From Macrostomum lignano (taxonomy: Eukaryota): DNA of 64,000 nt. How positions within the stretch are numbered: the first letter of the stretch is position 1; every line of letters starts with the position of its first letter. The notes under the pieces were generated by a model. It was not told the DNA's origin. It saw only the letters and a program-made list of their open reading frames with translations, and searched no databases. The position numbers and the translations under genes were made by a program. Shown here one piece after another: positions 4,960 to 59,659 of this stretch. The stretch covers positions 149,312-213,311 of the forward strand of contig NIVC01000782.1 of assembly GCA_002269645.1 (NCBI GenBank), read 5' to 3'.

Positions 4960-19456
<14,497 letters not shown>

Positions 19457-20749: not shown

Positions 20750-21250
20750 AAAATCCTAGAGACATGTCCATGCCACACTCCAGATCATGTAATATATGCC
20801 CAAAAATTCAGGCATGAACTGGCCTTGCATGCCAAAATTAAGTGCGCACAATTGGCATGTCACTCCTAAGAAAAAAGTATGTGTGCACACCTGGCATGTA
20901 ATTTATAGAATCAGGCATAACAGTTTTTGGGAAGTAGAAAAAAACTGAAAAAAAAGTTAAATTTCAAGCTTTCCAGTTTTTTCAAGCTTGTAAGAAGCAT
21001 TTAAACAAATCTTTGCATGTATTAATTTTCTGCTATAAATAGTATTGCCAAAAAAGCATAAAAATCAACTAAATTATATGCTGCTAAGGGTCTTATTATG
21101 CAATTTAAAGAAGGCCATTCATTGTCAAAAGCTAAAAAAGGTTATTTATTATTGCAACACCAGCATATTTTTGGGAATGGGTGTGCACTAATTTTTTTTT
21201 GGTATGCATCAAATATTCCCCATTTATACCAGTGCTAAGGCAAAAAATGC
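20750..21250. repeat. Internally deleted copy of dispersed element also at 46915-48020
   Basis: 20754-20900 aligns by eye with 46916-47045 and 20900-21200 with 47650-47960 in the same orientation. Confidence 0.7.
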
Positions 21251-26800: not shown

Positions 26801-29094
26801 CAAGGCCAAGCCTTCAAAATTAAAATCGCCGAACTTAAACTGATTTATAATTTCTTAGAAGTTATTCTTTTAAAACAAAGTAGGGGCTAGACTCAGATTG
26901 ATTGGATGCCGACATAAAAGATTTCATCAGCTTCAAGATTACATTCATCAATTTTAAAGATTATACGCGTTTTAGGCCTACACAGTCTGATTTTTCATGT
27001 TAGAACCACCCGTGTCAGCAGTTTATACGCGAATTCAGCACAATTTTAGGTACGATAAACATGCATATCCTGCATGCTGGTTGCCTTTACTGCATGCTGG
27101 ATACTCGTACATATTGCCTGCACAATGACAAACAAACTAGTACCGTCTAAATTCAATATTGTAGCCTAATCACAACTGAATAGTATTGCTTTCTATTCGT
27201 TAATAAAAAACGGGAGTTAAATACATTTCACTGTACAGAGTTAGTTATTCCTAAAGCAACTTTCGATACATCATCAATTTTGAATATGCTTAATTTTGAG
27301 TACAAGTGCCAGCAGCAGGCTTGTTTGAGCTGACTGCGATCCCTAAAATACAGATATGGATATTAGATATGACTTAGGGGCCTAGCCTAGATAGATGGAT
27401 CGTCAGAATATCATTAAAATAGATCATATCATCATCGTTAGGCCTACTACCTGGTTCTGCCACACTGACTAGACTTAGACTAGACTAGAGTCTAGACCTA
27501 TTCTATTGGTATAGAAAAATTAAAATCAAACTTGATGGGGTTGGGAAGCACATTGATCATTAAATATAGGCCTACCAAATAAATCAAGTTTTAATGCATG
27601 GGGATAATAATAAGCTTTTAATATCAAAGCATTTTATTTTTAAAACCAAACAAAAAGTAAATGGTTAATTTCTAGCATAAAAAGTTCATTAGGCCAGGCC
27701 TACATTTATAAAATAAGAATGTTTTGACTAAATTCTTATTTTTGTTATTTAAATTTTGTTTTTGCCCCTAAATTATTGTGGCCATAATCATGGATATTTT
27801 GTATCTAGACTTTTCTTTCCTGCAAACATTTATTTTATCAAAGGTTATATTATTATAATTATGATATATCTATATTTATATAGCATTAGGTAAGATTATG
27901 TTATTTAACCATTTTCATATTATAGTTCTAAAAAATTATAAAATTTAATGGTTACTTATAATATAAATCTATGTTTATATGCTAGTTTTGTTAATTAATA
28001 TTTGTTGCCTTGGATTGGTAATTAACATGGTTAAATAATCTATGACCAAATTGGCTTAGGGGTAAAATAGTCTATAGGTGAAATTGTTTTAAATGCGAAA
28101 TTTCCATAGCTAACATAGCTTAAGGGAATAATGACTAGTTATTTTTTAATAGGTTTGCTAATTTGCTTTGTTTTTTTTACCCAAGAAACAAATTTTTTAG
28201 ATGCAGAATTATATACCCTCTATACCCTCCCTATATTCTCCCTGTACCTTCCATACCCTTCATATACCCATCTTTATCTCTCTACATCCTCCATACCCCT
28301 TCCCTATACCCTAATGCTCTCTATATACCCTCTGTACACTCCATACCTTCCTATACTCTCTATACTCTCCCTATATCTCTCTATACCCTCCATACTCTTT
28401 ATACTCTCCCTATACCCATTTATACCCTCCCTATATACCTTCTCTGTACCTCCATACCCTCGCTATACCCTCCATACCCTTCCTATACCCTCCATACCCT
28501 TCCTATACCTTCCATACCCTCCATACTTTTTCTATACCCACCCATGGCCTCCCTGTACCCTCTATGCCCTCCATATACCCTCAATACTCTCCCTATACCC
28601 TCCATACCCTTCTATACCCATTCATACCCTCCATATACCCTCCATACCATCCCTATACCCTCCATACCATTCCTATACCCTCCATACCATCCCTATACCC
28701 TCCGTACCATCCCTATACTCTCCTTATAACCTCTCCATACCCTCCATACCCTCCATACTTTTTCTATACCCACCCATGGCCTCCCTGTACCCTCTATGCC
28801 CTCCATATACCCTCAATACTCTCCCTATACCCTCCATACCCTTCTATACCCATTCATACCCTCCATATACCCTCCATACCATCCCTATACCCTCCATGCC
28901 CTCCCTATACTCTCCATACAATCCTGCTTTTCCTATACTTCTCCTTCCCGCGTTATACTTTTCCCTATCCAGCCTCTACTATCCCCTCTTTCCACCTCCA
29001 GCGCCTCCCCCTCTCTAGCCCCTACCCTCTCTTCCTTTACTTTCCAGCCCCCATCCTCTACTCCTTTCCAGCGCCCACCCTCTTCTCCCATCAG

Positions 29095-29610
29095 CCCCCA
29101 CCCTCTCCTCCACTCCAGCGCCCTCCCTCTCCTCCACTCCAGCGCCCTCCCTCTCCTCCACTCCAGCGCCCTCTCTCTCCTCCACTCCAGCGCCCTCCCT
29201 CTCCTCCACTCCAGCGCTCTCTCTCTCCTCCACTCCAGCGCCCTCCCTCTCCTCCACTCCAGCGCCCTCCCTCTCCTCCACTCCAGCGCCCTCCCTCTCC
29301 TCCACTCCAGCGCCCTCCCTCTCCTCCACTCCAGCGCCCTCCCTCTCCTCCACTCCAGGGCCCTCCCTCTCCTCCACTTCAGCGCCCTCCCTCCCCTCCA
29401 CTCCAGCGCCCTCCCTCTCCTCCACTCCAGCGCCCTCCCTCTCCTCCACTCCATCGCCCTCCCTCTCCTCCACTCCAGCGCCCTCCCTCTCCTCCACTCC
29501 AGCGCCCTACCTCTCCTCCACTCCAGCGCCCTCCCTCTCCTCCACTCCAGGGCCCTCCCTCTCCTCCACTCCAGGGCCCTCCCTCTCCTCCACTTCAGCG
29601 CCCACCCTCT
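29095..29610. repeat. 24-bp polypyrimidine minisatellite (CTCCAGCGCCCTCCCTCTCCTCCA)n in left TIR
   Basis: Tandem array; source of the PPSPPLQR / LEWRRGRA ORFs. Confidence 0.95.
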
Positions 29611-30714
29611 ACTCTCCTTGGTTATGCCTTTGTTACGCTCTTCCCTCCTCTCTGTTTTACTTACTGTGTCATGCATAACCCGTCTGCTACAGTGTTTTTA
29701 AATAGCCTTTTATACCCTCCTCTTTCCCTAGCCCCTCCTCCCCCGGCGGCTCCCCTTCTCGTAGCTCTGCTAATAAAATCGTAATTCTTCTTCTCTTCAG
29801 AATAATTTGCCCAGCTGCGAACTGTGATGGTGCATACCGGGTACTCGCAATTTAAAAAGCGTATGCTTTTTACTGATTTAATTCCGACGCAACCAAGCAA
29901 ATCGTTTACTTTCAAGTCCGTGCATTTTTCTTGTGTTTAACTTTTCACCGTTCGGCGTTAATGCCGTGTGGCGTTGGTGTAATACTATCGCGAAATTCAA
30001 TTTCCAATGTCATTATATAACTATTGTCGCTTTTCTGTATTACAACTATATACTATACTTCTGCATTTATTGACGTAACATTGTGCCAATAATGTCACAT
30101 TGTGTGGCCCCAATATGAATCTGTTGCTGAATGCAACTTATAGCGCAATGACCATTTTAATCGCTTGAAATACATTGTAATGTAATACTGTATCGCTTTT
30201 GGCAATCGAAACGAGACTTTAGCCAGACTCCTCACTGATCCAAATGCTCCTCAAGCAAAGGTACGAGTATATGGAAAGCAGACTGAGCTCCGCAGACTTA
30301 GTATATTTGATCTTCGGATCGCGGATAGAACCAAGGAAATCTTGATACGTAAATAAAATTGGAGTCACTTTTCCTACTTCCACTTCCCTGCTCTTTCCCT
30401 GACCACAGTCTGTGCCCCAGGCTTAAGTTAGACCAACGCAAAATACTAACCTGAATAGGAAGCAAGCAACTCACTTCCCATCACTCTAGTCTTTTTCTGC
30501 CACTGTTGTCTTGCAATACTCGCAAAGATCTCGTATGGCGTCCTATTTGAATTGGCGCAAGTCTCGTTTACATAGTCGAAAGCAATACTGGTGCCAATTA
30601 TTTGTGTCGATCAAGTTTCCTAGAGAATGATTTGTTGATAACTGTATATTTGCTGTCTTAGAGCTGCACGCTGTGTTTAACCATTACTTTGTCGTAGAGG
30701 AGCTGATGAAGGGA

Positions 30715-31420
30715 GGCGTTGGGGCGGACCTTTTGGAGGGGCGGAGCTGATGGGGGCGGTAGCGGTGGAGCTTTTGGAGGGGCGGAGCTGATGGGGGCGG
30801 TAGGGGCGGAGCTGATGGGGGGCGGTAGGGGCGGAGCTGATGGGGGGCGGTAGGGGTGGAGCTGATGGGGGGCGGTAGGGGCGGAGCTGATGGGGGCGGT
30901 AGGGGTGGAGCTGATGGGGGCGGTAGGGGCGGAGCTGATGGGGCGGTAGGGGCGGAGCTGATGGGGGCGGTAGGGGCGGAGCTGATGGGGGGCGGTAGGG
31001 GCGGAGCTGATGGGGGGCGGTAGGGGCGGAGCTGATGGGGGCGGTAGGGGTGGAGCTGATTGGGGGCGGTAGGGGTGGAGCTGATGGGGGGCGGTAGGGG
31101 TGGAGCTGATGGGGGGCGGTAGCGGCGGAGCTGATGGGGGCGGTAGCGGCGGAGCTGATGGGGGGCGGTAGGGGCGGAGCTGATGGGGGCGGTAGGGGCG
31201 GAGCTGATGGGGGCGGTAGGGGCGGAGCTGATGGGGGGCGGTAGGGGCGGAGCTGATGGGGGGCGGTAGGGGCGGAGCTGATGGGGGCGGTAGGGGCGGA
31301 GCTGATGGGGCGGTAGGGGCGGAGCTGATTGGGGCGGTAGGGGCGGAGCTGATGGGGGCGGTAGGGGCGGAGCTGATGGGGGGCGGTAGGGGCGGAGCTG
31401 AGGGGGGCGGTAGGGGCGGA
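30715..31420. repeat. 23-25-bp G-rich minisatellite (GGGGGCGGTAGGGGCGGAGCTGAT)n in left TIR
   Basis: Tandem array with G-tracts and GGGCGG boxes. Confidence 0.95.
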
Positions 31421-31639
31421 GCCCTACGTGTACGTGTATTCGAGCTACGCTGGTAGTGCAGTTGTTTGTCTAGTATAGTTTATACATGCGTATACTGTAT
31501 GTACATGTAGTCTCACAATCCCAGCAAAAGCTAGACATTTTATTTCTTTGGTTAGTAATCGTGGGGATATTAGATCCACATGCAGCTATATCGTCATTCG
31601 GTCAAGTTATGAACCCAGTCCCGCTCGATCCAGTTGCAC

Positions 31640-32212
31640 AGATTCTCAATTGGATTGCCAGTCCATGGTGCGGATGTTGTTCTCAGCAAGCTTCGGATCG
31701 TTGTCCTGCTGAAACTGGCAGCACATACCGGCGACCATCAGAACCAGTGCGGGAAAATTTGCTCTCATCACTTCAGATGACCTTGGCCCCAGTCCTGGGG
31801 TGTAGAGCTTGCATGTTGCTTCGCCCAGTTCAAGCGCCGCTTCCGGTTTTTGTCGGAGATGAATGGCTTCTTCCTAGCAATGCGGCCATGCAGTCCGGCA
31901 GCTACCAGACGGCGGCGGACAGTCATAGGGTGCAGCTGGACACCTGAAGTTCACGGCTGATGTCCACAGCGGTTAGCCGACGGTTGGACTCGGGCATTCG
32001 CACAATTCGTCGATCCAGTCGGTGGTCAGTTTTCGGTGCCCGCCAGGTCTTGAGGCACAGCCTGTGCTGCCAGTGCTGCTGAGGCGCCTGAATGCTTGCT
32101 GCTGGACGCACGTTTTCTGCGTACGTGACTTTGGCACGCTGGGAAACTCCTTGGTCGAACAGGGCCCTGATTTTCCTACACGATTCAGGCGATAGAGCTT
32201 TGCCTTTCCCAT
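31640..32212 (-). pseudogene. Decayed Tc1-family transposase
   Basis: Across frameshifts the minus strand reads MGKAK..RPGGHRKLTT/RLDRRIVRM..RLTAVDISREL/TVRRRLVAAGLHGRIARKKPFISDKNRKRRLNWAKQH/KVI*SDESKF/FQQDNDPK/DW..NPIENL. These are Tc1 HTH and DDE motifs with internal deletions and a stop. Confidence 0.88.
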
Positions 32213-34324
32213 TCTAGGAGAGTTCGAGATCATTTTTGCTTGGGTTGTATTGAATTTGATGTTTTGGACTTGGACTTGGATGTTTTGGACTTTGGAATCA
32301 GCAGGGCCACTGTTGTAGCACCTTTTAGCCCAATTAATTAAGTGGTCTCATTACTGTGTGACTTATCAAATTCGATTGTGAGATAAGGACTTCAATTAAA
32401 CAGACTCAATTGTGAGTAATTACACAACACATAACTATAATTTTACTGATTGATACCACGGTTATCTATAACTGATTAGATTAAATGCTTCCGCAATCTG
32501 TGAAGGTTATGAAACTAAAAGTTCGAATTTGTGTTAGGTGGTCTTAATTCATTGTGCGCCACTTTATGTATAATGTTGCTGAGTACTTTCAAGGCTCAAT
32601 CCAACTACATGTACCATGTCGGAGTGGCCGTCTAAATATGGCTAAAACACACTAAAAATAAAGCCTGAGAATTTGCATTTACATTGAGATAAGTAGTAGA
32701 CCTTGGAACTGGTTAACAGGCCTCAAAACGAGGCAATTGTGTTTTAAATTGAAACTAAACTGATACTGAAATTGAGCATGAAAAAGACGTACGCTCAAAA
32801 TCATTCAAAAACGACGTTAATTTGCTCTCACCGTTAATGGAGAGCCGAAACTGATACAGTGGCGTTAATTTCAATTCCTGACTACTGGCGGCAGCCCCAT
32901 CATTTTCTCTATAATGCAGCTGCTATCTCACGGGAGCTGCAAACACAGCTTTTAAATTGGGCTGAGTAGCTGATTGGGCCGCCTTAATTGTTTCCACGGC
33001 GCCTCCGGTGTGCAGGGAATACATGTAGCTGGTCATTCGGGCATGGATCCTTGTCCAGATGTATGAGGGGCACTACGAAAGTTCTGAGCCATTCGATGGC
33101 ATTGGATACATGTACGAGTGTCCCTTGACGTGTGCGACAACCCAGTGAAAAATGATTCATGGATTCCACGTGGGTTCCACGTGGCCATGTGGAATTTAAA
33201 TGTTTCTTTATTTTTTGCAAATTAATAACTTAAAGATGACATAATGGTATGCAAAGTATTTTTTATGCATTATTTTTTTATTTTTACTGTCCTAATGTTG
33301 ATGTGGATTTTACAAGGAATTCATGAGAAATAAGCGTATATTGATTCAACATGGAATCCACTTCGGTAAAAAACTGTGATACACCACATTCAGACATTTT
33401 TAGGAAATTACTATAATTAATTATTATATTTATATGTTTTTAAGTAAAAATTAATATCTTAAAGCTAAATTATAATCGGCAAATAAAACACTGTTTGTTA
33501 AAATAGACAAAATAGAAGTGAACAATAAAAAACCCTTCGTGCTTTTTAAAATTAAATTTATTTTATTTTATATTCGTCAATGTTTTGATTCAAGGCCTTG
33601 AAAGATAAATTGCCTTGTTTATGGCTATTTAAGCACCTTAAAAATTTTAGTAGACCTAGCCTATAGGCAATAACTTATCAGGCCATAGCCTCCATGAGAT
33701 TAGAAATTAGATAAATCAGTATTTTATCATAGATAGGCCTAATACTTTTGGTAAAATCCATGATAAATTTATTTAGGCCTAGGCCTCCAATTTCTAGGAA
33801 TCCCATGGCCATGTCCATAGATTGGCTACTCATTTTTTTAACTTAAATAGGCCTTTAGAAGTTCATAATTTCCTCTTAGTCCTACCTATTAGTCCTATCT
33901 ATTTATATGTATGCTTAATAGGTGTATTTTAAGCTAGGCCTGCTATAACTATCAATTTAGGTCCTTCTATTTTAATTAAGGTTAGGACTAGCTTGACTTT
34001 GTGAATTGTGACTAGTCAATCTAGTTAATATGTTAAAAATCAATTAATTTATGATTTTCTTCAAAAAAGTCTGTTAGCATCTTTTGGACTTGTTGCATTT
34101 TTAATAACAATATTATTAATTATAATAAATAATTCTTTGCAATTACACTTGCAACTTGCTTTTGGCATAGCTAGCCTAGCAGATCCCTAAGGTTGCTAAT
34201 AAAAATAAAGAATGATTATTGTAAATTTGATCTGATTTAGGCCAAGTCCAGAATTTAATTTTAAGCCATAGGGCATAGCTATTTAGGCTTAGGTTAGGCC
34301 TAGGCCTAATGTTTAATTATACTA

Positions 34325-34683
34325 TTTTTTTATTAGAGGCAGGGGGGTTGTGTGCACCCTGGCGCACTTTAAGCGACATAGGCACACAACTGGCAAGAGG
34401 CATTGCTGCCCATTCCGCCGACTCCCCTGAGCAGGCACACAAGTATTTGGATATATATGCAAGCACACTCACACAGGAATGTACAGCGGCCCTAGCTTTA
34501 TTTATTGTTAGGCATGTATACTTCACTGTGCCTTGGGGGTTGGCTCTCAAGGCCATTAATTGCATGAGCAGAGAGCCAAGCTGAGATTCCAATTCAGCCC
34601 CAAATTAATATGACTGCACTTGGATTCAAGCTTGGGTCGCTGGCACACCAGAGCAGCTGCGCTACCACTTGGCTACGGCCCCC
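34325..34683 (-). mobile_element. tRNA-derived SINE, family A, copy 2
   Basis: Reverse complement of 13948-14305; flanked by TTTAAT(T/C)ATACTA (34312-34324 and 34687-34699). Confidence 0.88.
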
Positions 34684-35077
34684 GCTTTTAATCATACTAG
34701 GCCAGCAAATATAAAAAACATGCATTGCTTTGCCTAAATACTTTATAGTCTAAAATCAATTTTAAAATAAAAAATTAAATTTATAGAAACATATATTAAT
34801 TATTTTTATACTTATTATTTTAATTTTATTAATTTTATTTTATTGATTGACTTAGGTAGGGTTTTCTTTTTTGCTAGAGACAAGGTGCAAAATCATACCC
34901 TATCATGCTCACTTTTAGGGTTTTATGATTTTAAGGCTTAGAATGCAGTTTCTTTTTTTTTATATAAAGGCAATGCAAATAAGGCTTCAACATAAAAATA
35001 GGTAATGAGATCGTACCTAAACTGTATCAACTTTTTAATTTCAGTTTTCAAGGTACAATTTTAAGATTTAGGGTGCA

Positions 35078-35170
35078 CTTGACTTACTTGACTTAGCTGC
35101 AGGGGGCTCTGTGCATCCAGAAACAGCGAGGAGGCATTGCTGCCCATTTTGCTAACCCCTGGCAAAGGCA
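35078..35170 (-). mobile_element. Short 3' terminal fragment of a LINE
   Basis: Homologous to 57399-57475; ends in a TAAGTCAAG tandem tail. Confidence 0.6.
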
Positions 35171-35278
35171 TATGCACACTTTGCACTTAAAAAATAAACC
35201 TAGGACTTAGGCCTAGTTAATTTTAAAATAAACTTTATTAAGTATTCATCCTTAAATTAGTTTTATGAATTATATCAA

Positions 35279-35380
35279 TCCTATATACTAAAAATGGTCT
35301 GTCTGTGTCTATGTGATCGATTAGAGAAAAAATGGCTGGACCGATTTTGTTCGAACTTGCACTGTTCGATCAGAAATTTT
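35279..35380 (+). mobile_element. Possible Helitron-like 5' end
   Basis: A|TCCTATATACTAAAAATGGTCTGTCTGT..AAAATGGCTGGACCGATTTT resembles non-autonomous Helitron heads; the 3' hairpin/CTRR was not located. Confidence 0.35.
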
Positions 35381-35884
35381 CCCGTGACTGTACATGCATC
35401 GTGGCTAAGAAATTGCTCGATGCTAAAGGCATTAAATATTTGAAAAACATGCTTTTTTGCAAAGGTCAAGCAAACTTTTCGACTTGAAATGCATTGTAAG
35501 AATGCTAGAGAACAAACTGACTGGTTGAATTCTGATTCTGAAATAGATTGCATCATAACTGAATTGTAACTCCGACTTGAATTGAAAATGCAGTGTGGAA
35601 GCGTAGCACCAGACTTGATTTAAATTGCGTAACCATATTGTTAACTGATACTGACTGACTGGATATTGATTATGTCATAACTGCTTCGTGTGATTTACTC
35701 TATGCTTGGATTTTAAAGTGTTGAATTATATAAGTGCAAAATTTGATGTTATCAAAACGATGAGAGCTAGCCTAGAGGTGAACAAACTGAACTGCTAAAT
35801 GCAAAGACGATGGTTCGAATTTTCATAGAGTATAATTTTTTTAATTAAAGCTTTTCAACGTCAGGAAAACTAAGACTTTTTAAA

Positions 35885-37260
35885 AAGAAGCGTCATGTAA
35901 AAATCATAGAAGCGTCATGTAAACAATCATAGAAGCGTCATGTAAACAATCATAGAAGTGTCATGTAAAAAATCATAGAAGCGTCATGTAAACAATCATA
36001 GAAGCGTCATGTAAAGAATCGTAGAAGCGTCATATAAAAATCATTGAAGCGTCATTTAAAAAATCATAGAAGCGTCATGTGAAAATCATAGAAGCGTCAT
36101 GTAAAAAATCATAAAAGCGTCATGTAAAAAAATCATAGAAGCGTCATGTAAACAATCATAAAAGCGTCATGTAAACAATCATAGAAGCGTCATGTAAACA
36201 ATCATAGAAGCGTCATGTAAACAATCATAGAAGCGTCATGTAAACAATCATAGAAGCGTCATGTAAACAATTATAGAAGCGTCATGTAAAAAATCATAGA
36301 AGCGTCATGTAAAAAAATCATAGAAGCGTCATGTAAAAAATCATAAAAGCGTCATGTAAACAATCATAGAAGCGTCATGTAAACAATCATAGAAGTGTCA
36401 TGTAAAAAATCATAGAAGCGTCATGTAAACAATCATAGAAGCGTCATGTAAACAATCATAGAAGCGTCATGTAAACAATCATAGAAGCGTCATGTAAAAA
36501 ATTGTAGAAGCGTCATGTAAACAATCATAAAAGCGTCATGTAAACAATCATAGAAGCGTCATGTAAAAAATCATAGAAGCGTCATGTAAAAAATTCATAG
36601 AAGCGTCATGTAAAAAATCATAAAAGCGTCATGTAAACAATCATAGAAGCGTCATGTAAACAATCATAGAAGCGTCATGTAAACAATCATAGAAGCGTCA
36701 TGTAAAAAAATTGTAGAAGCGTCATGTAAACAATCATAAAAGCGTCATGTAAACAATCATAGAAGCGTCATGTAAACAATCGTAGAAGCGTCATGTAAAC
36801 AATCATAGAAGCGCCATGTAAAAAATCGTAGAAGCGTCATATAAAAATCATAGAAGCGTCATGCAAAAAATCATAGAAGCGTCATGTTAACAATCATTCA
36901 AGTGTCATGTAAAAAATTGTAGAAGCGTCATTTAAAAATTATAGAAGCGTCATGTAAACAATCATAGAAGCGTCATGTAAAAAATCATAGAAGCGTCATT
37001 TAAAATCATAGAAGCGTCATGTAAACAATCATAGAAGCGTCATGTAAACAATCATAGAAGCGTCATGTAAACAATCATAGAAGGGTCATGTAAAAAATCA
37101 TAGAAGCGTCATTTAAAAATCATAGAAGCGTCATGTAAACAATCATAGAAGCGTCATGTAAAAAATCATAGAAGCGTCATGTAAAAAATCATAGAAGTGT
37201 CATGTAAAAATCATAGAAGCGTCGTGAAAAAATCATAGAAGCCTCATTTAAAAACTAATG
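35885..37260. repeat. 23-bp satellite (ATCATAGAAGCGTCATGTAAACA)n, about 60 copies
   Basis: Directly visible tandem array. Confidence 0.97.
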
Positions 37261-37299
37261 AAAGTGTCATTTAAAAAATTAAGAAGCATCATGGTAGAA

Positions 37300-38450
37300 T
37301 AAAAGAAGCGTCATGTCAGACATGAAGGGTGTCATGTAAAAATTAAATGCAGCTATAATGCTGTGCTGGGGAGAAAAAACTGAGACATAAAGGCTCTCAG
37401 AGAATAACTGAGATTACGGGGGGGGGGGGGTTTCTGAGATGTCAAAGTAAAAGTCAGAAGCTACTTCAAAGTTCATGTACTTTACTCATTTTTTATTGCA
37501 TTCTTTGTTGGCTCGCCACGGGGGGCGCTGATAGAAGAAGAGTCATGTAAAAAATAAAAGTAGCACTACGTATACATAAAAGAAAAGTCATGTTCAAGTT
37601 AAAAGATTAATTTGGGAATTGCTACAATGTCAAAGCTTGGTGGAAATCGTTATAGTGCTTGATTCTTAAAGAAGGAATCACTAAAATGTCAAGGCTTAGG
37701 GGAGAAGAATTGCTGAGATTTCAAGGCTTTAGGTTGGGTTAAAGTTAGGTTTAGGTCAGGTGTGGGTTGAGGGTTATATTTTATCAGGTTTCAAGGTTAA
37801 CAGAATAACAGGGGATTTTTTAGATTTCAAGGTTTATGGGGGCCATCGCTGACATGTTAAGGCTTACGGGGGGAATAGCTGAGATGTCAAGGCTCACGGG
37901 GGTATAAATGAGATTTCAAGGCTAAAGTCAGAAGCTACATGTAGTTTATTGAAAACTTTTTATTACATTATTTGATGCCTCCTCAGGGGAGGGATCGCTG
38001 ATAAAAAAACGTAATGTAAAAAATAAAAGAAGCTTCATGTCGAAGTTAAGATATTCATTTGGGAATCCCTACGATGTCGAGGCTTGCAGGGAATCGCTAT
38101 AATGCTGTAGTAGTGCTATTATGACTCTTAGAGAGAATTACTGAAATTTCAATGCTTTAGGGTTAGGTTAGGGTTAGGGTTAGGGTTAGGGTTAGGGTTC
38201 GGCTAGGGTTAGAGTTAGAAGGTTGACAGATATTTTTAGATTTCCAAGGCTTATTGGGGGCATTGCTGAGATGTCAAGGGGGGGAAGTTGATATGTTAAA
38301 GCTTGTGGGGGGGGAATTATTGACATGTCAAGGCTTACAAGGTTTGACAGGAGATTTTTTAAGATTTCAAGGATATATATGTAGCTTATTAAAAAAAACG
38401 TGTATTGCATTTCTTTGGCTCCCCAACGGGGGGCGTAGATTGCTAGTATT
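37300..38450. repeat. Diverged tandem repeat of about 460-bp unit (about 2.5 copies)
   Basis: Matching landmarks at 37460/37932/38383, 37514/37981/38421 and 37585/38030. Confidence 0.7.
38157..38216 (+). repeat. Interstitial telomeric repeat (TTAGGG)n
   Basis: Five consecutive perfect TTAGGG units (38168-38197) plus flanking variants. Confidence 0.9.
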
Positions 38451-40602
38451 ATCTATCAATCTTAATTGGCAACAATTATTTTTCTATTTCATTTCAGCCT
38501 AACATTACATGGCCCATCCTCAAACTTGGATGTCACCTTGGTCTTGCCTTTGAAGCATGCAAAGCTACTTGGAATTGGAATTTAATATCTCGAATGCTAC
38601 CTTTTGTGAAGCAATGGTAAGTTTTAGTTATAAACTGATTTTTTCTGTCATCAAAATCTGTTATAAGATCAAAATCTATCAAAATCTATTACAAAATCTA
38701 TTATCAATCTGTTATAAAATTCTGTAATTTAACCCCTTTCTTTTCTAAGGTTGCTCACCTGACCTGAAGAAGCAGCATTCTGGCAATTGGCAGCAGCATG
38801 TTTCTGACTGTTCTAATTCTGGTGCATTATATTATTGTTAATTAATTAATGCTATTGACAATGTCAATTTCAAATTATATATTATATCATATGCGCAGCG
38901 CAACTCTAAAGATATCAATATCTACATCAGTGTGTTTATTCTTTGTGTGCCAGTGACTCACTACTGTACATAAATACACCTTACTTATTGAGACATCCTT
39001 TTTGAATATATTTTTGTGCAGAAATACTTTTTGGCTATAGCTAATGTTTTATCTGTGTTTCAGTTTCTTTTATATGGTATTGAGATCTGGGGTTTGTATG
39101 AAATTTTGAGATCTGGTATTATTTTGAGATTTAGGATGCAACAATTTATTATGGCAACCAGTATAATGGCTGCTTACTCAATGACAATGTGGATTCTATG
39201 TGAAATACATAATTACTTCCATGTGGATCTTCCATGTGGAATCCATATCTTGATTCCACATGGATGGACGGAGACAAATGCACATATGGATTTCATATGA
39301 AAAATCCACATGGAATCCATATCATTTTTTTCACTGGGAATCGCCCCTGGCCGCAAAAACTGTACATGTATGTAAAAACATACTCAGCAACAGTCAAAAG
39401 TTCCACCCTCCAAGCGAGATGAATTTTTCACTTATTGCGATCATCGCTATCTGTCGACGTGTTAACACATTTAGTGCCAAACGTGTGCAGTTACGTGCAC
39501 TTGTACATGTAATTCTGGAAATTTGGTAATGAAGTAGTACATTTAGCAGTGTATGAGGCTCGCCAGCGCAAGAACTCCCTGCAAAAGTCCTCTCTGTCCC
39601 TGCAATGGCCAATGCGATCTTAGTCCCAGCAGTGTCCCTTCTATTCGACTATGACTTCGAGATAGACAGCTAAAAGACACTAGATGGCAGGTAAGTGCAA
39701 TGCCCCTCTAGTCGGAAGTCCGATTTCGATAGCTCTGGTTTGGTGAGCCGGGGCGCACGGACTGGTGGTAGCGGGTTAGTTAATCCGCGGGTTAGCTAAT
39801 CTCTACCTTTCAAATTCTCCCTGCATTGTCTCTCGCTGTCTTCCCTTAGCTATAGGACCTTGCTGCTCGCCACACAATCCAGCTACCACGGGGCTGACCA
39901 TCTGACAGGAGTGAGAAGCCAGAGTTCTAAGTGATTCATTTCTGAGTTCTGAGGCCCAGAGCTACAGGCTTAAAAAGGCCGAACCCATCAGAATGTTGCG
40001 GAGCTGCGTCATGCCATTGAAAACGCTTGGCAGCAACTTCCCAGGACTTTCTGCGCCGCCTCATCCTGGGGATGCCCCGCAAAGTCGCCGCACTTCAGCA
40101 TGCGAGGGATCGTTCTTAAGCATTTGTGATTCTAACTGCATATTGCAAAAAAATAATTGTGTTGATTTTGCTCGACTGACGTTTATATTGATTCACTCGC
40201 GGCGACTTATTTGCGTAACTCGAGGGTTGAATTGTGAGTGAGAAGTCCTCCCTCCCTCAAACTCCTCCCTCCCACAAGTCCGCCTCTACCGGCCTCCCCC
40301 TCCGTAAGTTCCGTCCCTATAAGCTTCGACTGTCTCTGCACTGTCTCTCAATCTTGCGAGTGACGCAACTTATAGCATTACGCCACAAGACGACTTGGGT
40401 TGAGGAATGAAGTGGGGGAAGGGGATCGCGGTGTGCGAGAGTTGGACGGATTAAAGCTACGCCTCAGTTTTCTCGTATCTTTTATTTCAAATTAGTCCAA
40501 GCTAGAAGCTAGCTCACTGGCGCATAGAGTGGCGACTTTTTTCAATGTTGCTTTGTCAGTGGGGATTCTCAACTTGACTGACAAGATACGAGTATTTTGT
40601 AT

Positions 40603-43600
40603 GACTGGGTTCAAAACTTGACTGAATGACGATATAGCTGCATGTGGATCTAATATCCCCACGATTACTAACCAAAGAAATAAAATGTCTAGCTTTTGCT
40701 GGGATTGTGAGACTACATGTACATACAGTATACGCATGTATAAACTATACTAGACAAACAACTGCACTACCAGCGTAGCTCGAATACACGCACACGTTGT
40801 GTATACTTCAATCGGTCGAATAAATAGAAAAACCATCAACTCCGCCCCTTCGACCCCCCTCCATCAGCTCCGCCCCTACCGCCCCCCTCCAACAGCTCCG
40901 CCCCTACCGTCCCCCATCAGCTCCGCCCCCTCCAAGAGGTCCGCCCTTACCACCGCCCCTACCGCCCCCATCAGCTCCGCCCCTACCGCCCCCCCCCTCA
41001 GCTCCGCCCCTACCGCCCCCCATCAGCTCCGCCCCTACCGCCCCCCATCAGCTCCGCCCCTACCGCCCCAATCAGCTCCGCCCCTACCGCCCCCATCAGC
41101 TCCGCCCCTACCGCCCCCATCAGCTCCGCCCCTACCGCCCCCATCAGCTCCACCCCTACCGCCCCCATCAGCTCCGCCCCTACCGCCCCCCATCAGCTCC
41201 GCCCCTACCGCCCCCCATCAGCTCCGCCGCTACCGCCCCCCATCAGCTCCGCCCCTACCGCCCCCCATCAGCTCCGCCCCTACCGCCCCCCATCAGCTCC
41301 GCCGCTACCGCCCCCATCAGCTCCACCCCTACCGCCCCCCATCAGCTCCACCCCTACCGCCCCCAATCAGCTCCACCCCTACCGCCCCCATCAGCTCCGC
41401 CCCTACCGCCCCCATCAGCTCCGCCCCTACCGCCCCCATCAGCTCCGCCCCTACCGCCCCCCATCAGCTCCGCCGCTACCGCCCCCATCAGCTCCGCCGC
41501 TACCGCCCCCATCAGCTCCACCCCTACCGCCCCCATCAGCTCCGCCCCTACCGCCCCCCATCAGCTCCGCCCCTACCGCCCCCCATCAGCTCCGCCCCTA
41601 CCGCCCCCCATCAGCTCCGCCCCTACCGCCCCCATCAGCTCCGCCCCTACCGCCCCCATCAGCTCCGCCCCTACCGCCCCCCATCAGCTCCACCCCTACC
41701 GCCCCCCATCAGCTCCGCCCCTACCGCCCCCATCAGCTCCACCCCTACCGCCCCCCATCAGCTCCGCCCCTACCGCCCCCCATCAGCTCCGCCCCTACCG
41801 CCCCATCAGCTCCGCCCCTCCAAAAGCTCCACCGCTACCGCCCCCATCAGCTCCGCCCCTCCAAAAGGTCCGCCCCAACGCCTCCCTTCATCAGCTCCTC
41901 TACGACAAAGTAATGGTTAAACACAGCGTGCAGCTCTAAGACAGCGAATATACAGTTATCAACAAATCATTCTCTAGGAAACTTGATCGACACAAATAAT
42001 TGGCACCAGTATTGCTTTCGACTATGTAAACGAGACTTGCGCCAATTCAAATAGGACGCCATACGAGATCTTTGCGAGTATTGCAAGACAACAGTGGCAG
42101 AAAAAGACTAGAGTGATGGGAAGTGAGTTGCTTGCTTCCTATTCAGGTTAGTATTTTGCGTTGGTCTAACTTAAGCCTGGGGCACAGACTGTGGTCAGGG
42201 AAAGAGCAGGGAAGTGGAAGTAGGAAAAGTGACTCCAATTTTATTTACGTATCAAGATTTCCTTGGTTCTATCCGCGATCCGAAGATCAAATATACTAAG
42301 TCTGCGGAGCTCAGTCTGCTTTCCATATACTCGTACCTTTGCTTGAGGAGCATTTGGATCAGTGAGGAGTCTGGCTAAAGTCTCGTTTCGATTGCCAAAA
42401 GCGATACAGTATTACATTACAATGTATTTCAAGCGATTAAAATGGTCATTGCGCTATAAGTTGCATTCAGCAACAGATTCATATTGGGGCCACACAATGT
42501 GACATTATTGGCACAATGTTACGTCAATAAATGCAGAAGTATAGTATATAGTTGTAATACAGAAAAGCGACAATAGTTATATAATGACATTGGAAATTGA
42601 ATTTCGCGATAGTATTACACCAACGCCACACGGCATTAACGCCGAACGGTGAAAAGTTAAACACAAGAAAAATGCACGGACTTGAAAGTAAACGATTTGC
42701 TTGGTTGCGTCGGAATTAAATCAGTAAAAAGCATACGCTTTTTAAATTGCGAGTACCCGGTATGCACCATCACAGTTCGCAGCTGGGCAAATTATTCTGA
42801 AGAGAAGAAGAATTACGATTTTATTAGCAGAGCTACGAGAAGGGGAGCCGCCGGGGGAGGAGGGGCTAGGGAAAGAGGAGGGTATAAAAGGCTATTTAAA
42901 AACACTGTAGCAGACGGGTTATGCATGACACAGTAAGTAAAACAGAGAGGAGGGAAGAGCGTAACAAAGGCATAACCAAGGAGAGTAGAGGGTGGGCGCT
43001 GAAGTGGAGGAGAGGGAGGGCCCTGGAGTGGAGGAGAGGGTGGGCGCTGAAGTGGAGGAGAGGGTGGGCGCTGAAGTGGAGGAGAGGGAGGGCCCTGGAG
43101 TGGAGGAGAGGGAGGGCCCTGGAGTGGAGGAGAGGGAGGGCCCTGGAGTGGAGGAGAGGTAGGGCGCTGGAGTGGAGGAGAGGGAGGGCGCTGGAGTGGA
43201 GGAGAGGGAGGGCGATGGAGTGGAGGAGAGGGAGGGCGCTGGAGTGGAGGAGAGGGAGGGCGCTGGAGTGGAGGAGAGGGAGGGCGCTGAAGTGGAGGAG
43301 AGGGAGGGCCCTGGAGTGGAGGAGAGGGAGGGCGCTGGAGTGGAGGAGAGGGAGGGCGCTGGAGTGGAGGAGAGGGAGGGCGCTGGAGTGGAGGAGAGGG
43401 AGGGCGCTGGAGTGGAGGAGAGGGAGGGCGCTGGAGTGGAGGAGAGAGAGAGCGCTGGAGTGGAGGAGAGGGAGGGCGCTGGAGTGGAGGAGAGAGAGGG
43501 CGCTGGAGTGGAGGAGAGGGAGGGCGCTGGAGTGGAGGAGAGGGAGGGCGCTGGAGTGGAGGAGAGGGTGGGGGCTGATGGGAGAAGAGGGTGGGCGCTG

Positions 43601-45430
43601 GAGGGGAGTAGAGGATGGGGGCTGGAAAGTAAAGGAAGAGAGGGTAGGGGCTAGAGAGGGGGAGGCGCTGGAGGTGGAAAGAGGGGATAGTAGAGGCTGG
43701 ATAGGGAAAAGTATAACGCGGGAAGGAGAAGTATAGGAAAAGCAGGATTGTATGGAGAGTATAGGGAGGGCATGGAGGGTATAGGGATGGTATGGAGGGT
43801 ATATGGAGGGTATGAATGGGTATAGAAGGGTATGGAGGGTATAGGGAGAGTATTGAGGGTATATGGAGGGCATAGAGGGTACAGGGAGGCCATGGGTGGG
43901 TATAGAAAAAGTATGGAGGGTATGGAAGGTATAGGAAGGGTATGGAGGGTATAGGAAGGGTATGGAGGGTATAGCGAGGGTATGGAGGTACAGAGAAGGT
44001 ATATAGGGAGGGTATAAATGGGTATAGGGAGAGTATAGAGAGTATGGAGGGTATAGAGAGATATAGGGAGAGTATAGAGAGTATAGGAAGGTATGGAGTG
44101 TACAGAGGGTATATAGAGAGCATTAGGGTATAGGGAAGGGGTATGGAGGATGTAGAGAGATAAAGATGGGTATATGAAGGGTATGGAAGGTACAGGGAGA
44201 ATATAGGGAGGGTATAGAGGGTATATAATTCTGCATCTAAAAAATTTGTTTCTTGGGTAAAAAAAACAAAGCAAATTAGCAAACCTATTAAAAAATAACT
44301 GGTCATTATTCCCTTAAGCTATGTTAGCTATGGAAATTTCGCATTTAAAACAATTTCACCTATAGACTATTTTACCCCTAAGCCAATTTGGTCATAGATT
44401 ATTTAACCATGTTAATTACCAATCCAAGGCAACAAATATTAATTAACAAAACTAGCATATAAACATAGATTTATATTATAAGTAACCATTAAATTTTATA
44501 ATTTTTTAGAACTATAATATGAAAATGGTTAAATAACATAATCTTACCTAATGCTATATAAATATAGATATATCATAATTATAATAATATAACCTTTGAT
44601 AAAATAAATGTTTGCAGGAAAGAAAAGTCTAGATACAAAATATCCATGATTATGGCCACAATAATTTAGGGGCAAAAACAAAATTTAAATAACAAAAATG
44701 AGAATTTAGTCAAAACATTCTTATTTTATAAATGTAGGCCTGGCCTAATGAACTTTTTATGCTAGAAATTAACCATTTACTTTTTGTTTGGTTTTAAAAA
44801 TAAAATGCTTTGATATTAAAAGCTTATTATTATCCCCATGCATTAAAACTTGATTTATTTGGTAGGCCTATATTTAATGATCAATGTGCTTCCCAACCCC
44901 ATCAAGTTTGATTTTAATTTTTCTATACCAATAGAATAGGTCTAGACTCTAGTCTAGTCTAAGTCTAGTCAGTGTGGCAGAACCAGGTAGTAGGCCTAAC
45001 GATGATGATATGATCTATTTTAATGATATTCTGACGATCCATCTATCTAGGCTAGGCCCCTAAGTCATATCTAATATCCATATCTGTATTTTAGGGATCG
45101 CAGTCAGCTCAAACAAGCCTGCTGCTGGCACTTGTACTCAAAATTAAGCATATTCAAAATTGATGATGTATCGAAAGTTGCTTTAGGAATAACTAACTCT
45201 GTACAGTGAAATGTATTTAACTCCCGTTTTTTATTAACGAATAGAAAGCAATACTATTCAGTTGTGATTAGGCTACAATATTGAATTTAGACGGTACTAG
45301 TTTGTTTGTCATTGTGCAGGCAATATGTACGAGTATCCAGCATGCAGTAAAGGCAACCAGCATGCAGGATATGCATGTTTATCGTACCTAAAATTGTGCT
45401 GAATTTGCGTATAAACTGCTGACACGGGTG
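40603..45430 (-). repeat. Right terminal inverted repeat of foldback element (4828 bp)
   Basis: Reverse complement of 27007-31620; carries the C-rich array 40830-41885 and the purine array 42990-43570. Confidence 0.92.
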
Positions 45431-46225
45431 TTAGAACACTAATGTTTGCAAAGACACGAGGATGTATTTCATAATTCCACAAATAATTTCGGGCAATGAA
45501 ATAATTTCATGGGCCTTATATCTACTTGATCCGTAGACTTTTTTCACTTAGTGCTGACAAACTTTTGTTTTATGAATTGTTAGTTTTGTGTGTGAACGAT
45601 CATCAGAAGAAATACTGCTGTGCAGGTATAGCTAGGCACAGCAAGCTAAACTTGAAATGGCCGAACAGTGTTAGGGGGGATATAAACAATAAAAAATGAA
45701 AAAAACAAAAACATAGACGTCTATTCTATTTTGCATAATGTGCTTTTATCGAAAAACACTTTAGGAAATCGAATTATGAAGTTTTTAAATAAGTGCAAAA
45801 ATACAGAAATCTGGTGTTCAGTTGTAATAATAAAAGGAATTCCAAAAATACAAAGCCTAGTTCTAATAAGTTAGTGCATTTTTTTAAAGTTCTCTCCGTT
45901 TAATTTACGCCTTAATTCTGCTGATATGTTTTAGTCCCAATTGTGTAAGAAGCTAGTTTATTCAGTTTATAACGGTGTTTTCCGGCATTGTCAGTTATCG
46001 TAAACAGCCATAGTTAAAGAGAGCCTTACGATACGACGACGCTCTCATTGCTTACCAAAGTAATTAGTCCCATACTCAAAGCTCGCTTAAAAGAATACGT
46101 AATTTCTAGGATTAGGTATTGGTACATTACACATTCAGTTTAATTTGCATAAATAGGGCTTCTTACTTGCTTATTTGGTTTAAAAACCTAATTTTAGTAA
46201 ATACCAAAGACCAAACTTATAAGAT

Positions 46226-46394: not shown

Positions 46395-49300
46395 GTAAGC
46401 ATATAAAAACAATTTTGCCTAGACCTAGCCACCTCTTGTCTATCCCCAATGCCCTATGTTTTAGCTTAGTAGGCTAATAATAATATTATGCCTAGTATAG
46501 TAATAGCTTACAAAATAGGTTCCTAGGCATAAGCCATATTATAATATTCCTTTAAGTTGCATAGGCCCAACCTAATTCAAAAGCATAGGCTATAGGCATA
46601 GGCATAGGTTAGGCATAAGCTATAAAGCATAGGCTAGCAATTAACTATACATAATCAAGCTTACATTGCAGTGTACAAAAGTGTTAATTAAAGTATGTGT
46701 CATAATGATGTGGTATAAATTATACTAAACAATCATTTTCCTAAATAAAGTAAATTTTAAAATTAGAACAACAATTTTTTTCTAGATAAGTATACCAAAA
46801 GTTCCTATAATTAGTAACTAATAAAAATATACTTGAATCAATAATATACATAACTATTTTGTTTTTCAAATTAAATAGTTTTATGTTTTTGTAGCAATTT
46901 TTGTTATATGCATTCCACACTCCGGATCATGTAGTATATGCCTGAAAATTCAGGCGTGCATTGGCCTTGCACGCCAAAATTAGGTGTGCACAGTTGGCGT
47001 GCATCACTCCTAAGAAGAGAGTATGCGTGCACACCTGGCATGCCATAGTTTGGAACACCCTGAATGTATGCCAGACTAAAATCTCTCACAATTTTTTTGG
47101 TACGCCAGTGTACGCCAATTTTAAGTGCATGCCCACTTTCAAAACTACAGTACTACAGGTTTTGCGACAATAAATGACTTTTTTTACGTTGCAACAATAA
47201 ATTATTTTGTTTTTAAATTGTGTAATATAATTTTTTTAGCTAATAATTTGGTTAATACTTTTGCTTTTTTGCTGATATTATTTAATATTTATAGCCAAAA
47301 CTTAATACACGCAAAGATTTGTTTAATTTTTTATTACAAGCTTTAAAAACCCGGAAGCTTGAAATTGCTTAAAAATAAACTTGTTATTTCACAAATAACA
47401 AGTTTTCACGAACTTTTCACGAACTCTTCTGCATGATTCTATTAACTTCATGCACACTATTTTCTTAGACTATTTGATTTGATTCCGCAACTACAGGAAC
47501 ATGTGCGCTTCTTTTTGAATATGCATTTTTATACGCCAGATAGTACACCAAATTTAAAAAAAGTAAAAAATTGTATGCCAAAAGTCATGAGTGTACGCTG
47601 GATTAATCCGGCATACCACCCCTCTTCTGGACTATGGCTGGCATGCACTTTATGGAATCACGCGTAAGAGTAATTGTGAAGTAGAAAAAAGATGAATAAG
47701 TTCATTTTTAAGTCCAAATTTCAAGTTTTCCCATTTTTTTAGCTTGTAAAAGAGCATTTAAACAAATTTTTGCATGTAATAACTTTTTGGCCATAAAAAA
47801 GTATCGCCAAAAAAGCATAAAACGCAACCAAATTATCTGGTAATAAGGGTCTATTACACAATTTAAAAGAATTACTTTATTGTCACAATGTAAAAGAGGT
47901 CATTTATTATTGCAACAGTGCATATTTTGATAATCGATGTGCACTACATTTTTCTGGTGTGCATTTGTAATTATTCAATTTTTGTTTGGGCGTCCACCTA
48001 GCATGATCCGGACTATGGTATACATTTGCATGTGTCTATTGCTTGTTGCATTGGTTAATGCACTTTTTAATCACGCAATTTTTAGTGGCATATAATTTAC
48101 TAGAATACTTGATTGGTGTAATTTACTAGTGTACACTTAACTAGATAGCTAAATACTTTCTAGTATACATATAAAGTTTGGGCATTCTTTTGTTTTACAA
48201 TCCTCTAGTAGGTCTAGTTTCATATTATGATCCATATATGCTTAATAATAGCCATCCAAACTGGACAGGTAAAATGGTCGCTGGCCAAGGTAAGTTGCAA
48301 AATTATAAATGCAAGAAACAAAAAATGGAAGAAGAAAGAAAGAAAAAAAAGAAAAGAAAGAAAAAAAAGAGAAAAAAAAGAAAAAGGCAAGAAAAGTCAT
48401 TAAGTCGCAATCAAGGAAACTAAGTCACAAATTTAGACAAAACTAAGTTGCACTAGACAGGTAAAATTTTGAGATTGGGTATGTATGTTACCATCCCCAT
48501 TAAAAAAGTCAATAGGACATTTCAGTATATCAAGAAATTACATTTTACATGTATTTCCCATTAAGCTCACTTTCAAGTCAATTTAAATTGTCATTGCAAC
48601 TCATTTAAATATATACGTAAGCCATAGTTATGGAAGTACATAGCTTATATTCACTTTTGTCATATGATCATTTAAATGATGAAGTTATATATAAGTGATT
48701 GTAAGAGGAAAATGAACTTACATTTGTCTTACAATCACCCTGCAATATAAAACACATCTATTTAATGGGGAGAGAGTGCCCAAAATTGGTTCTTGGTTTT
48801 TGATGGCTTTGGGGCTTTCAGTTTATGGAAGTTGTAGAAGCTAAAATTGTTTGTTTTGTTTAATTGAAACATTGATTATACCAACAATTTTCTATCATTT
48901 CAAAAATATAATCCCTCCAATACAATTCTACTATTAGTATAATCATATTTCAAAACCTATAAGCTCTTTTAATTTCGTCTTGCGATAACCTACATATAAT
49001 TTCACCATTTAACTGATTGTAAATGATCATATCATATAACAGAGGTGAATATAAGATTTATGTAAGACAAGATTTAATACTACTATAAAAGTATGCTTAG
49101 AAGTGGTCTTATTTTTGTCTTCTATGAGGGATTGTATAATACAAGTCCTAACTCCTATAGAGAACATAGTCTGGATCATGTTGAGTGTACTCTGGAATGT
49201 TCTAAACCAAGGCATTGCCAATGCCAAGTAAATGCACACCTGTGCCAAGCAAATGTATGCCAAACTAATATGTTACAAAAACAACATGCAACTTTTTATA

Positions 49301-58100: not shown

Positions 58101-58281
58101 TAAGGCAACTCCTATTCCTTAATCCAAATGTCTAAGTGGGTGAAGACTAGAGCGCTTTGTCGGCTCTGTCGATTGAGTGGCGGAAGTTCCTCCTTTCTAA
58201 AGACAACATCCCAACTTGCGAAAGTTCGAATACGTTTGAACTCTGATTGATGACGTCCCTCCGGTTTAGAAAAGCTTAAGC

Positions 58282-59656: not shown

Positions 59657-59659
59657 CGC

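Follow-up and report, generated by a model that had tools for sequence, protein, structure and literature searches.

The interval 27007-45430 of the 64-kb window (the whole stretch of DNA analysed here) probably represents a single insertion of a foldback-type, non-autonomous DNA transposon, and it is best read as a class II (cut-and-paste) element. This confidence applies to the single foldback-type insertion and not to a placement in the P superfamily, which is treated separately below. The sequence-only reading that preceded this analysis had proposed a terminal inverted repeat (TIR) element with a bounding target-site duplication (TSD), and this central proposal was borne out.

Element boundaries and target site

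The left inverted end, CACCCGTGTC, begins at 27007 and the right inverted end, GACACGGGTG, finishes at 45430, with TTAGAAC in direct orientation on both sides (27000-27006 and 45431-45437); ends and flanking repeat agree to the base with those claimed earlier. The complementarity of the inverted repeat ceases precisely at the element edges, where the next flank bases, C and T, do not pair. The tips match to the last base, the first mismatch is found at position +25, and a scan of the 64-kb window located the terminal 25-mer only at the two element ends. At this base composition, a 7-bp match is expected by chance with P ~1.4e-4.

26998..27006, no strand: left flanking direct repeat, core TTAGAAC at 27000-27006, extends to GTTAGAAC or TGTTAGAAC
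45431..45437, no strand: right flanking direct repeat TTAGAAC; start at 45430 in the 8-bp reading and at 45429 in the 9-bp reading

Because TG is both inverted-repeat tip and flank, the direct repeat has three readings: 7 bp (TTAGAAC), 8 bp (GTTAGAAC) or, if the final 2 bases of the right tip are counted as flank, 9 bp (TGTTAGAAC; 26998-27006 and 45429-45437). The 7-bp reading leaves the inverted repeat perfect to its last base. Of the TSD length suggested earlier (7, possibly 8 bp), both variants exist, and the 9-bp reading had been overlooked. The empty site deduced from the joined flanks (...TTTTCATGTTAGAACACTAATG..., with the junction stretch TTTTCATGTTAGAACACTAATGTTTGC) is an interrupted palindrome, TGTT-AG-AACA, in the context CA-TGTT-AG-AACA-CT. 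Such palindromes have a background frequency of 0.8% per centre, and the one observed is centred on the 8-bp reading, which it favours. Palindromic target motifs are typical of cut-and-paste elements (PMC4168063).

Inverted arms and tandem arrays

Each arm consists of unique DNA and three tandem arrays, whose units measure 20 bp (organised in a higher-order repeat of 232 bp), 24 bp and 25/49 bp, respectively.

27007..31620, + strand: left arm, 4614 bp (gapped alignment), begins CACCCGTGTCAGCAG
27070..27100, + strand: pair of subterminal motifs CTGCATGCTGG, at +64..+74 and +84..+94 from the tip, mirrored at 45337-45367
28211..28924, + strand: array A of the left arm, C-rich 20-bp units TACCCTCCATACCCTCCCTA, 232-bp higher-order repeat
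29043..29614, + strand: array B of the left arm, 24-bp units TCCAGCGCCCTCCCTCTCCTCCAC, ~24 copies
30737..31422, + strand: array C of the left arm, G-rich 25/49-bp units AGGGGCGGAGCTGATGGGGGCGGT
40603..45430, - strand: right arm, 4828 bp (gapped alignment), finishes CTGCTGACACGGGTG
40833-41860: right-arm mirror of array C, ~375 bp longer than the left
42983-43626: right-arm mirror of array B, 3 units more than the left
~43745-44226: right-arm mirror of array A, shorter by one 232-bp unit

In a global alignment the arms are 99.66% identical, with 15 mismatches over 4381 positions. All indels between them fall within the tandem arrays and amount to 232 bp for array A, 72 bp for B and ~375 bp for C, and variant repeat units are collinear across both arms over kilobases. 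The earlier description of near-identical, kilobase-scale arms with three kinds of array is thus confirmed. The paired CTGCATGCTGG motifs occur at both element ends and nowhere else in the window, and they are candidate transposase-binding sites; their position (+64..+94) is comparable to that of the Galileo THAP footprint at +63..+80 (PMC3688188).

Contents of the loop

The arms enclose a patchwork, in which a six-frame scan yielded a sole Pfam match, HTH_Tnp_Tc3_2 (E = 7e-16).

31621..40602, no strand: loop, 8982 bp, the only transposase trace being the Tc1/mariner remnant
31621..32420, - strand: decayed Tc1/mariner-type remnant with frameshifts and stops, adjoining the inner end of the left arm; limit at ~32420 placed by eye
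34312..34699, - strand: tRNA-headed SINE, ~360 bp, 13-bp TSD TAGTATGATTAAA / TAGTATAATTAAA
35886..37316, no strand: 23-bp tandem array AGAAGCGTCATGTAAACAATCAT, ~62 copies

The six-frame Pfam scan detected neither protein-primed polymerase nor integrase domains in the loop. A phmmer comparison of the six loop frames with PDB, which is weak in that the Tc1 HTH was missed too, gave no hit to any transposase, whether P, hAT, Transib or other. Two further claims of the sequence-only reading, a patchwork loop with no matching transposase and the non-autonomous status of the element, are upheld by these results. A putative second Tc1 fragment at ~39.9-40.25 kb has no Pfam or PDB support. The idea of one Tc1 element split by inversion at the left arm boundary was rejected, since both pieces cover the PIENLW region, with different sequences.

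The loop SINE, whose TSD carries 1 mismatch in 13, is 88.5-89.5% identical to window copies at 13948-14309 and 60020-60378; these two relatives are 97% alike, and the loop SINE is 10-11% diverged from them. It is far more diverged than the arms, an observation that counts against a single insertion and calls for either gene conversion between the arms or capture of old DNA.

Age and growth of the element

The element had been described as young, which does not follow from the arm identity, since arm-to-arm gene conversion could hold the arms identical and give the same picture. The further statement that it is able to carry multi-kb cargo goes too far, as the loop insertions could postdate landing at this site. 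A much smaller element might have landed and reached 18.4 kb in place, through insertion or expansion of SINE, Tc1 and array sequences in the loop, while gene conversion extended the arms inwards or homogenised them; the 9-kb “cargo” would then never have transposed, and the insertion would not be young. We regard this course of events as less likely than not. It draws on the contrast between the arm difference of 0.34% and the divergence of a loop SINE that bears its own TSD, on the heavy decay of the Tc1 remnant, and on the recruitment of internal sequence into TIRs known from Galileo (PMC4168063, PMC3573991); moreover, with only 7-9 bp, the TSD cannot serve to date the insertion. However, the old transposon fragments may equally predate the last transposition, already residing in the loop, and the collinearity of variant units between the arms also suits a recent common origin.

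Superfamily affiliation

Since the TSD is ambiguous and the palindrome is centred on 8 bp, three superfamilies are candidates: P, with a TSD of 7-8 bp, hAT, with 8 bp, and Mutator/Foldback, with 9 bp. A P-like element with a 7- or 8-bp TSD is tentatively put first, a Mutator/Foldback-like element (9 bp) seems unlikely, and a hAT-like element (8 bp) or any other type is in each case improbable.

In the P superfamily, TSDs are 7 bp long in Galileo and 1360 and 8 bp long in P; Galileo is a drosophilid family, and the sequence-only reading also named CA ends as a Galileo-type trait. Autonomous members encode a THAP-domain P-type transposase, of which no trace was found in this copy, and a conserved terminal 40 bp counts among the marks of Galileo/P ends. 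The element has the long TIRs with internal tandem repeats of the Galileo type. TTAGAAC agrees with the Galileo consensus GTANTAC at just 4 of 6 specified positions (P = 0.05), and the target TGTT-AG-AACA is palindromic yet unlike the Galileo motif AANGT/ACNTT. The earlier assignment to P/Galileo is not established: its one basis is the TSD length, readable in three ways, and at present it amounts to a guess.

As a Mutator/Foldback element, the insertion would have the 9-bp TSD TGTTAGAAC, an end reading ...CACGGG and a left tip with its two bases CA unpaired. Shifting the right boundary inwards by 2 bases indeed produces a 9-bp direct repeat, the majority of foldback elements are placed in Mutator with TSDs of 8-10 bp (PMC4079207), and tandem-repeat inverted arms around a variable middle domain, as found here, are the classic FB architecture. 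Yet this solution, which we consider unlikely, needs tips that are asymmetric by 2 nt where the 7-bp reading gives a perfect repeat, the palindrome centre coincides with the 8-bp and not with the 9-bp reading, and no MULE transposase was seen in the loop.

Mobilisation by a hAT transposase, with the long arms as a secondary elaboration, appears improbable. The 8-bp TSD GTTAGAAC lies exactly at the centre of the empty-site palindrome and conforms to the hAT/Hermes target 5'-nTnnnnAn-3' (PMC10368747), but one base of the left tip would then stay unpaired, and the inverted repeat of 4.6 kb contrasts with hAT TIRs of 10-25 bp (PMC3942097). The terminal motif does not fit either: the element has CACCC at its tip. 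Typical hAT tips follow YARNG (CAG.../TAG...).

Further types of element were rejected. Dada elements show a 6-7-bp TSD, lack TIRs and insert into snRNA or tRNA genes (PMC3706591); here, the TIRs are perfect and the target contains no RNA gene. Polinton/Maverick elements (15-20 kb, TIRs, protein-primed polymerase and integrase, 6-bp TSD) were dismissed on the domains absent from the loop and on a TSD that is not 6 bp, and Transib, CACTA, piggyBac and PIF on TSD length, TIR features or coding content.

Proposed mechanism of transposition

For a non-autonomous cut-and-paste element, a transposase encoded elsewhere would bind the terminal tens of base pairs and probably also the paired CTGCATGCTGG motifs. 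The unit would then be excised, and staggered cuts 7-9 bp apart in the palindromic target would allow its integration. The near-identity of the arms may have been kept by recent origin, by arm-to-arm gene conversion or by both, and array length would change by slippage of units.

Comparison with known systems

Arms of 4.6-4.8 kb had been considered unusual for a Galileo-type element, but there is a precedent: the Drosophila willistoni Galileo copy 112, 9021 bp in length, lacks a transposase and carries tandem repeats in its TIRs, which measure 4246 and 4680 bp (PMC4168063). Foldback copies that lack a transposase and combine perfect TSDs with array-containing TIRs of several kb are hence already known (PMC4168063). 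The present element resembles Galileo as a foldback with multi-kb TIRs that hold tandem repeats, AT-rich stretches and fragments of other transposable elements (PMC4168063, PMC3573991, PMC3688188), in its AT-rich palindromic target and in a binding-site-like motif ~70 bp from the tip. It shares with copy 112 the lack of a transposase, and Galileo TSDs are identical and 7 bp (sometimes 8 bp) in length. In contrast, the 9-kb loop has almost no counterpart in copy 112, the array units measure 20-25 bp instead of ~140 bp, and the host is not a drosophilid, given the tRNA-derived SINEs and WSC/PAN genes in the window; the likeness is one of architecture and description, not of sequence comparison.

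Drosophila Foldback (FB), Tetris and the nematode element Tm1 likewise have long inverted arms made largely of short tandem repeats and a non-coding, variable middle domain, and their copies are mostly non-autonomous. In this group, TSD length indicates the superfamily when the transposase is not known (PMC4079207, PMC3169594); their TSDs span 8-10 bp, typically 9, unlike the 7 bp of the perfect-repeat reading here, and a 9-bp TSD would require asymmetric tips. Non-autonomous hAT elements compare through the possible 8-bp TSD, which fits nTnnnnAn, and through short subterminal repeats, and differ in TIR length and terminal motif.

Outside mobile elements, the large palindromes of the human Y chromosome are maintained by arm-to-arm gene conversion. 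They, too, combine arms of high identity (>99.6%) with a far more diverged spacer, but they have no bounding TSD and are not mobile. An inverted segmental duplication (palindrome) generated by a replication or repair error, with TTAGAAC present by chance or microhomology, is a very unlikely explanation for the interval. Fold-back repair also makes long, near-identical inverted arms with a spacer, and a single copy is known; however, such an event does not predict base-exact outer ends bracketed by a direct 7-9-bp repeat (P ~1e-4), and the joined flanks form a palindromic target site. A foldback-type transposon insertion remains the preferred reading.

Significance

Elements of this kind are a cause of inversions and a frequent site of mis-assembly, they fold into hairpins or cruciforms, and minisatellite and satellite arrays originate from them. 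By itself, the element establishes no new principle, since foldbacks with 4-5-kb TIRs, internal arrays and no transposase have already been described; it does provide a clean, fully bounded and very large example in a non-model animal genome. It is conceivable, if doubtful, that it represents a P-superfamily foldback outside the Drosophilidae, which independently evolved Galileo-like multi-kb, array-bearing arms and still moves as an 18-kb unit with 9 kb of passenger DNA. If so, long repetitive TIRs would be a means, arrived at more than once, of mobilising non-autonomous elements of very large size. Genome-wide copies that confirm mobility, together with a partner transposase, would widen the taxonomic range of Galileo-like or FB-like architecture.

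Genomic setting

The element is represented by one copy, and a single TSD is the ground for inferring that it belongs to a mobile family. A scan of the 64-kb window disclosed no second copy, and none emerged when arm ORFs served as protein queries or when three ORFs of the window were looked up as exact proteins among contigs. Neither the terminal 24-mer nor a 28-mer from array B had an exact match in metagenome contigs, and a 28-mer from array C was not found in viral contigs. These searches likewise yielded no empty site and no autonomous partner. Rfam and tRNA scans revealed no RNA gene at the target or elsewhere in the window. An exon of the CHD gene matched database fragments at 45-57% identity at best, the head of the SINE had no match in prokaryote genomes, and a string search of the literature gave primer hits only.

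Inverted duplications are a known long-read artefact, for example from a chimeric palindromic read, but an assembly error is very unlikely here: within the window, unique DNA with genes borders the structure for 27 kb on one side and 18.5 kb on the other, 15 substitutions and entire repeat units set the two arms apart, and a unique 9-kb loop and a TSD are present. The insertion sits in an AT-rich spacer, with a CHD3/4-type gene on one side and a KH-domain gene on the other.

Boundaries and target site

The element begins with CACCCGTGTC... at 27007 and stops with ...GACACGGGTG at 45430, and the direct repeat TTAGAAC abuts both ends, exactly as the sequence-only reading had placed them. The terminal 25-mer occurs only twice in the window, at the two element ends, and a 7-base match is expected by chance with P ~1.4e-4 at this DNA composition. 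The left tip begins with CA and the left flank finishes with ...CATG-TTAGAAC; therefore, the target-site duplication (TSD) is readable as 7, 8 or 9 bp. With the 7-bp TTAGAAC the inverted repeat stays perfect to the last base, while the 8-bp GTTAGAAC and the 9-bp TGTTAGAAC leave one and two tip bases unpaired, respectively. The earlier proposal of 7 or possibly 8 bp thus named two readable lengths, but overlooked the third.

The reconstructed empty site (...TTTTCA-TGTT-AG-AACA-CTAATG...) holds a 10-bp interrupted palindrome whose centre is that of the 8-bp reading; in the DNA around it, 0.8% of centres have such a palindrome. Cut-and-paste elements have palindromic target motifs with the TSD at their centre (PMC4168063), and the site therefore provides further evidence for a transposase-made insertion; its centring on the 8-bp reading also means that one copy cannot fix the TSD length.

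Arms and tandem arrays

Local and global alignments delimit two inverted arms around a central loop:

27007-31620: left arm, 4614 bp
31621-40602: loop
40603-45430: right arm, 4828 bp

The arms are 99.66% identical (15 mismatches in 4381 aligned positions), and all indels lie within tandem arrays and correspond to whole repeat units or nearly so. Variant units are collinear between the arms, e.g., over 1705 nt ungapped at 98%, which together with the overall identity indicates a recent common origin of the arms or ongoing homogenisation. The near-identical, kilobase-long arms of AT-rich DNA and three kinds of array described previously are thereby borne out. From the outside in, each arm comprises:

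AT-rich unique DNA, ~1.2 kb
array A, C-rich 20-bp units with a 232-bp higher-order repeat
array B, 24-bp units
unique spacer, 1.1 kb
array C, G-rich 25/49-bp units
innermost unique DNA, ~200 bp

The motif CTGCATGCTGG occurs twice per arm, at +64..+74 and +84..+94, and nowhere else in the window. Since the Galileo THAP footprint lies at +63..+80 and the P-element sites at ~+40..+63 (PMC3688188), these paired motifs are plausible candidate transposase-binding sites.

Nearly all canonical G-quadruplex motifs of the window, (G3+N1-7)x4, fall in the arms (28408-29755 and the right-arm mirror), on the strand complementary to arrays A and B, and cover ~250 nt of the left and 190 nt of the right arm; beyond the arms there are 27 nt in the loop and none in the window outside the element.

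Loop and nature of the element

In a six-frame Pfam scan the sole match in the loop was HTH_Tnp_Tc3_2 (E = 7e-16). The domain is part of a minus-strand Tc1/mariner remnant, decayed and frameshifted, which lies flush against the left arm's inner end. The loop further contains:

34322-34683: tRNA-headed SINE of ~360 bp, with its own 13-bp TSD (one mismatch)
35886-37316: 23-bp array, ~62 units

The scan and a PDB search, the latter a weak negative that overlooked the Tc1 HTH as well, gave no signal in the loop for P/THAP, hAT, MULE, polymerase or integrase. The earlier picture of a patchwork lacking a matching transposase was fair, and the element is non-autonomous. A second Tc1-like piece near 40 kb, read by eye, was dropped, as the Pfam and PDB searches did not support it.

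The case for 27007-45430 as a single transposase-mediated insertion is strong, given the inverted ends paired to the last base, the direct duplication on either side of them and the palindromic target. It is a class II element of the foldback type and would be mobilised in trans. An inverted segmental duplication is unlikely, as it predicts neither coincident arm ends nor a flanking direct repeat, and an assembly artefact is likewise improbable in view of the 9-kb unique loop, the unit-wise differences in array length, the 15 substitutions and the TSD. This DNA transposon is real, has well-defined boundaries and is unusually large; it is non-autonomous and of the foldback type, a kind already known. 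No second copy was found in the window, in exact scans of metagenome and viral contigs, or in protein searches with arm ORFs.

Superfamily

TSD length and the "CA ends" are the grounds for the proposed P/Galileo assignment. TSDs measure 7 bp in Galileo and 1360 and 8 bp in P (PMC3698922), and Galileo, with the consensus GTANTAC/GTATTAC, now and then makes 8-bp TSDs (PMC4168063). TTAGAAC matches only 4 of the 6 specified consensus positions (P = 0.05, a weak match), and the 8- and 9-bp readings point elsewhere. Moreover, the Galileo family proper is drosophilid (PMC10990002), whereas the genome at hand, with its tRNA-SINEs and WSC/PAN genes, is not drosophilid. A P-like origin is tentatively the leading option and our best single guess, at somewhat less than even confidence.

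Read with the 8-bp GTTAGAAC, the element might instead belong to hAT, although its CACCC tip is presumably not hAT-like in look. This TSD fits the hAT/Hermes pattern nTnnnnAn (PMC10368747), but hAT terminal inverted repeats (TIRs) span 10-25 bp (PMC3942097). Mutator/Foldback, the superfamily given to most foldback elements (PMC4079207), would fit the 9-bp TGTTAGAAC, which however requires a 2-nt tip asymmetry. Dada, with 6-7-bp TSDs, is excluded, because such elements have no TIRs and insert into small-RNA genes (PMC3706591).

Age, size and possible cargo

There is precedent for multi-kb TIRs: the 9021-bp Galileo copy 112 of D. willistoni carries TIRs of 4246 and 4680 bp (PMC4168063). These comprise tandem repeats, AT-rich segments and fragments of other transposable elements, and the copy is devoid of transposase and flanked by identical TSDs (PMC4168063). 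In D. mojavensis the longest TIRs likewise occur in transposase-less copies (PMC3573991).

The arms diverge by 0.34% from each other, the loop SINE by 10-11% from its relatives. On one of two readings, the transposition was recent and moved a loop of already old DNA. The same contrast admits an old insertion, in which gene conversion homogenised the arms and the loop insertions arrived in place, a course of events we consider possible but rather doubtful. Given these two readings and a 7-9-bp TSD too short to date the event, the element may, but need not, be young and carry multi-kb cargo as proposed earlier.

Genomic setting and other repeats

The window is eukaryotic (animal) DNA with the following genes:

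1-19.5 kb, minus strand: CHD3/4 (Mi-2)-type gene with PHD, SNF2 and Helicase_C domains
51.7-52.5 kb: KH-domain exon
61-63 kb: WSC/PAN exons

The foldback occupies the AT-rich spacer (GC ~0.31-0.35) that separates the CHD and KH genes.

The tRNA-headed SINE has three window copies (13948-14309, 34322-34683, 60020-60378), which begin with GGGGGCCGTAGCCCAGCGGTAGCGC..., finish in an A-rich tail and each have a 10-14-bp TSD. The loop copy is 88.5-89.5% identical to the other two, which share 97.4% identity. Copies of a dispersed family (6742-7060, 19540-19830, 56660-56860) are 76-84% identical, the first two ending in an inverted tRNA-like segment (...GGTCGAGATTCGAACCCCCGACC...).

Two direct repeats with 78-86% identity (20769-21209 and 46911-47964) flank the foldback at distances of 6 kb on the left and 1.5-2.5 kb on the right, and are no part of it. 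They probably belong to a further repeat family, and the right copy carries an additional 600 bp that contain an inverted repeat.

A miniature foldback of ~460 bp (59196-59656; ends GGGTGGGTTTCAC...GTGAAACCCACCC) has 95-nt inverted arms that consist of 16-bp repeats (TTCACAAACGCGAAAC) and are 98% complementary. Its ends showed no clear TSD, and the stop-free ORFs around it gave no Pfam match. The minus strand of 57300-61100 has stop-free ORF fragments, one stretch of them RNase H-like, that on inspection by eye resemble remains of decayed non-LTR retrotransposons; no Pfam match was significant.

In the CHD3/4-type gene, across 44-18297, minisatellite arrays of 16-33-bp units, many strongly strand-skewed, lie in many of the stretches that separate exon-like ORFs (e.g., 314-1338, 5337-5951, 12308-13095, 15285-16372). 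Such arrays seem unusually abundant in this genome, and those of the foldback arms and of the CHD gene may be one phenomenon. The same gene interval holds a MITE-like unit at 16969-17416, whose 93-nt inverted ends are 85% complementary and 262 nt apart.
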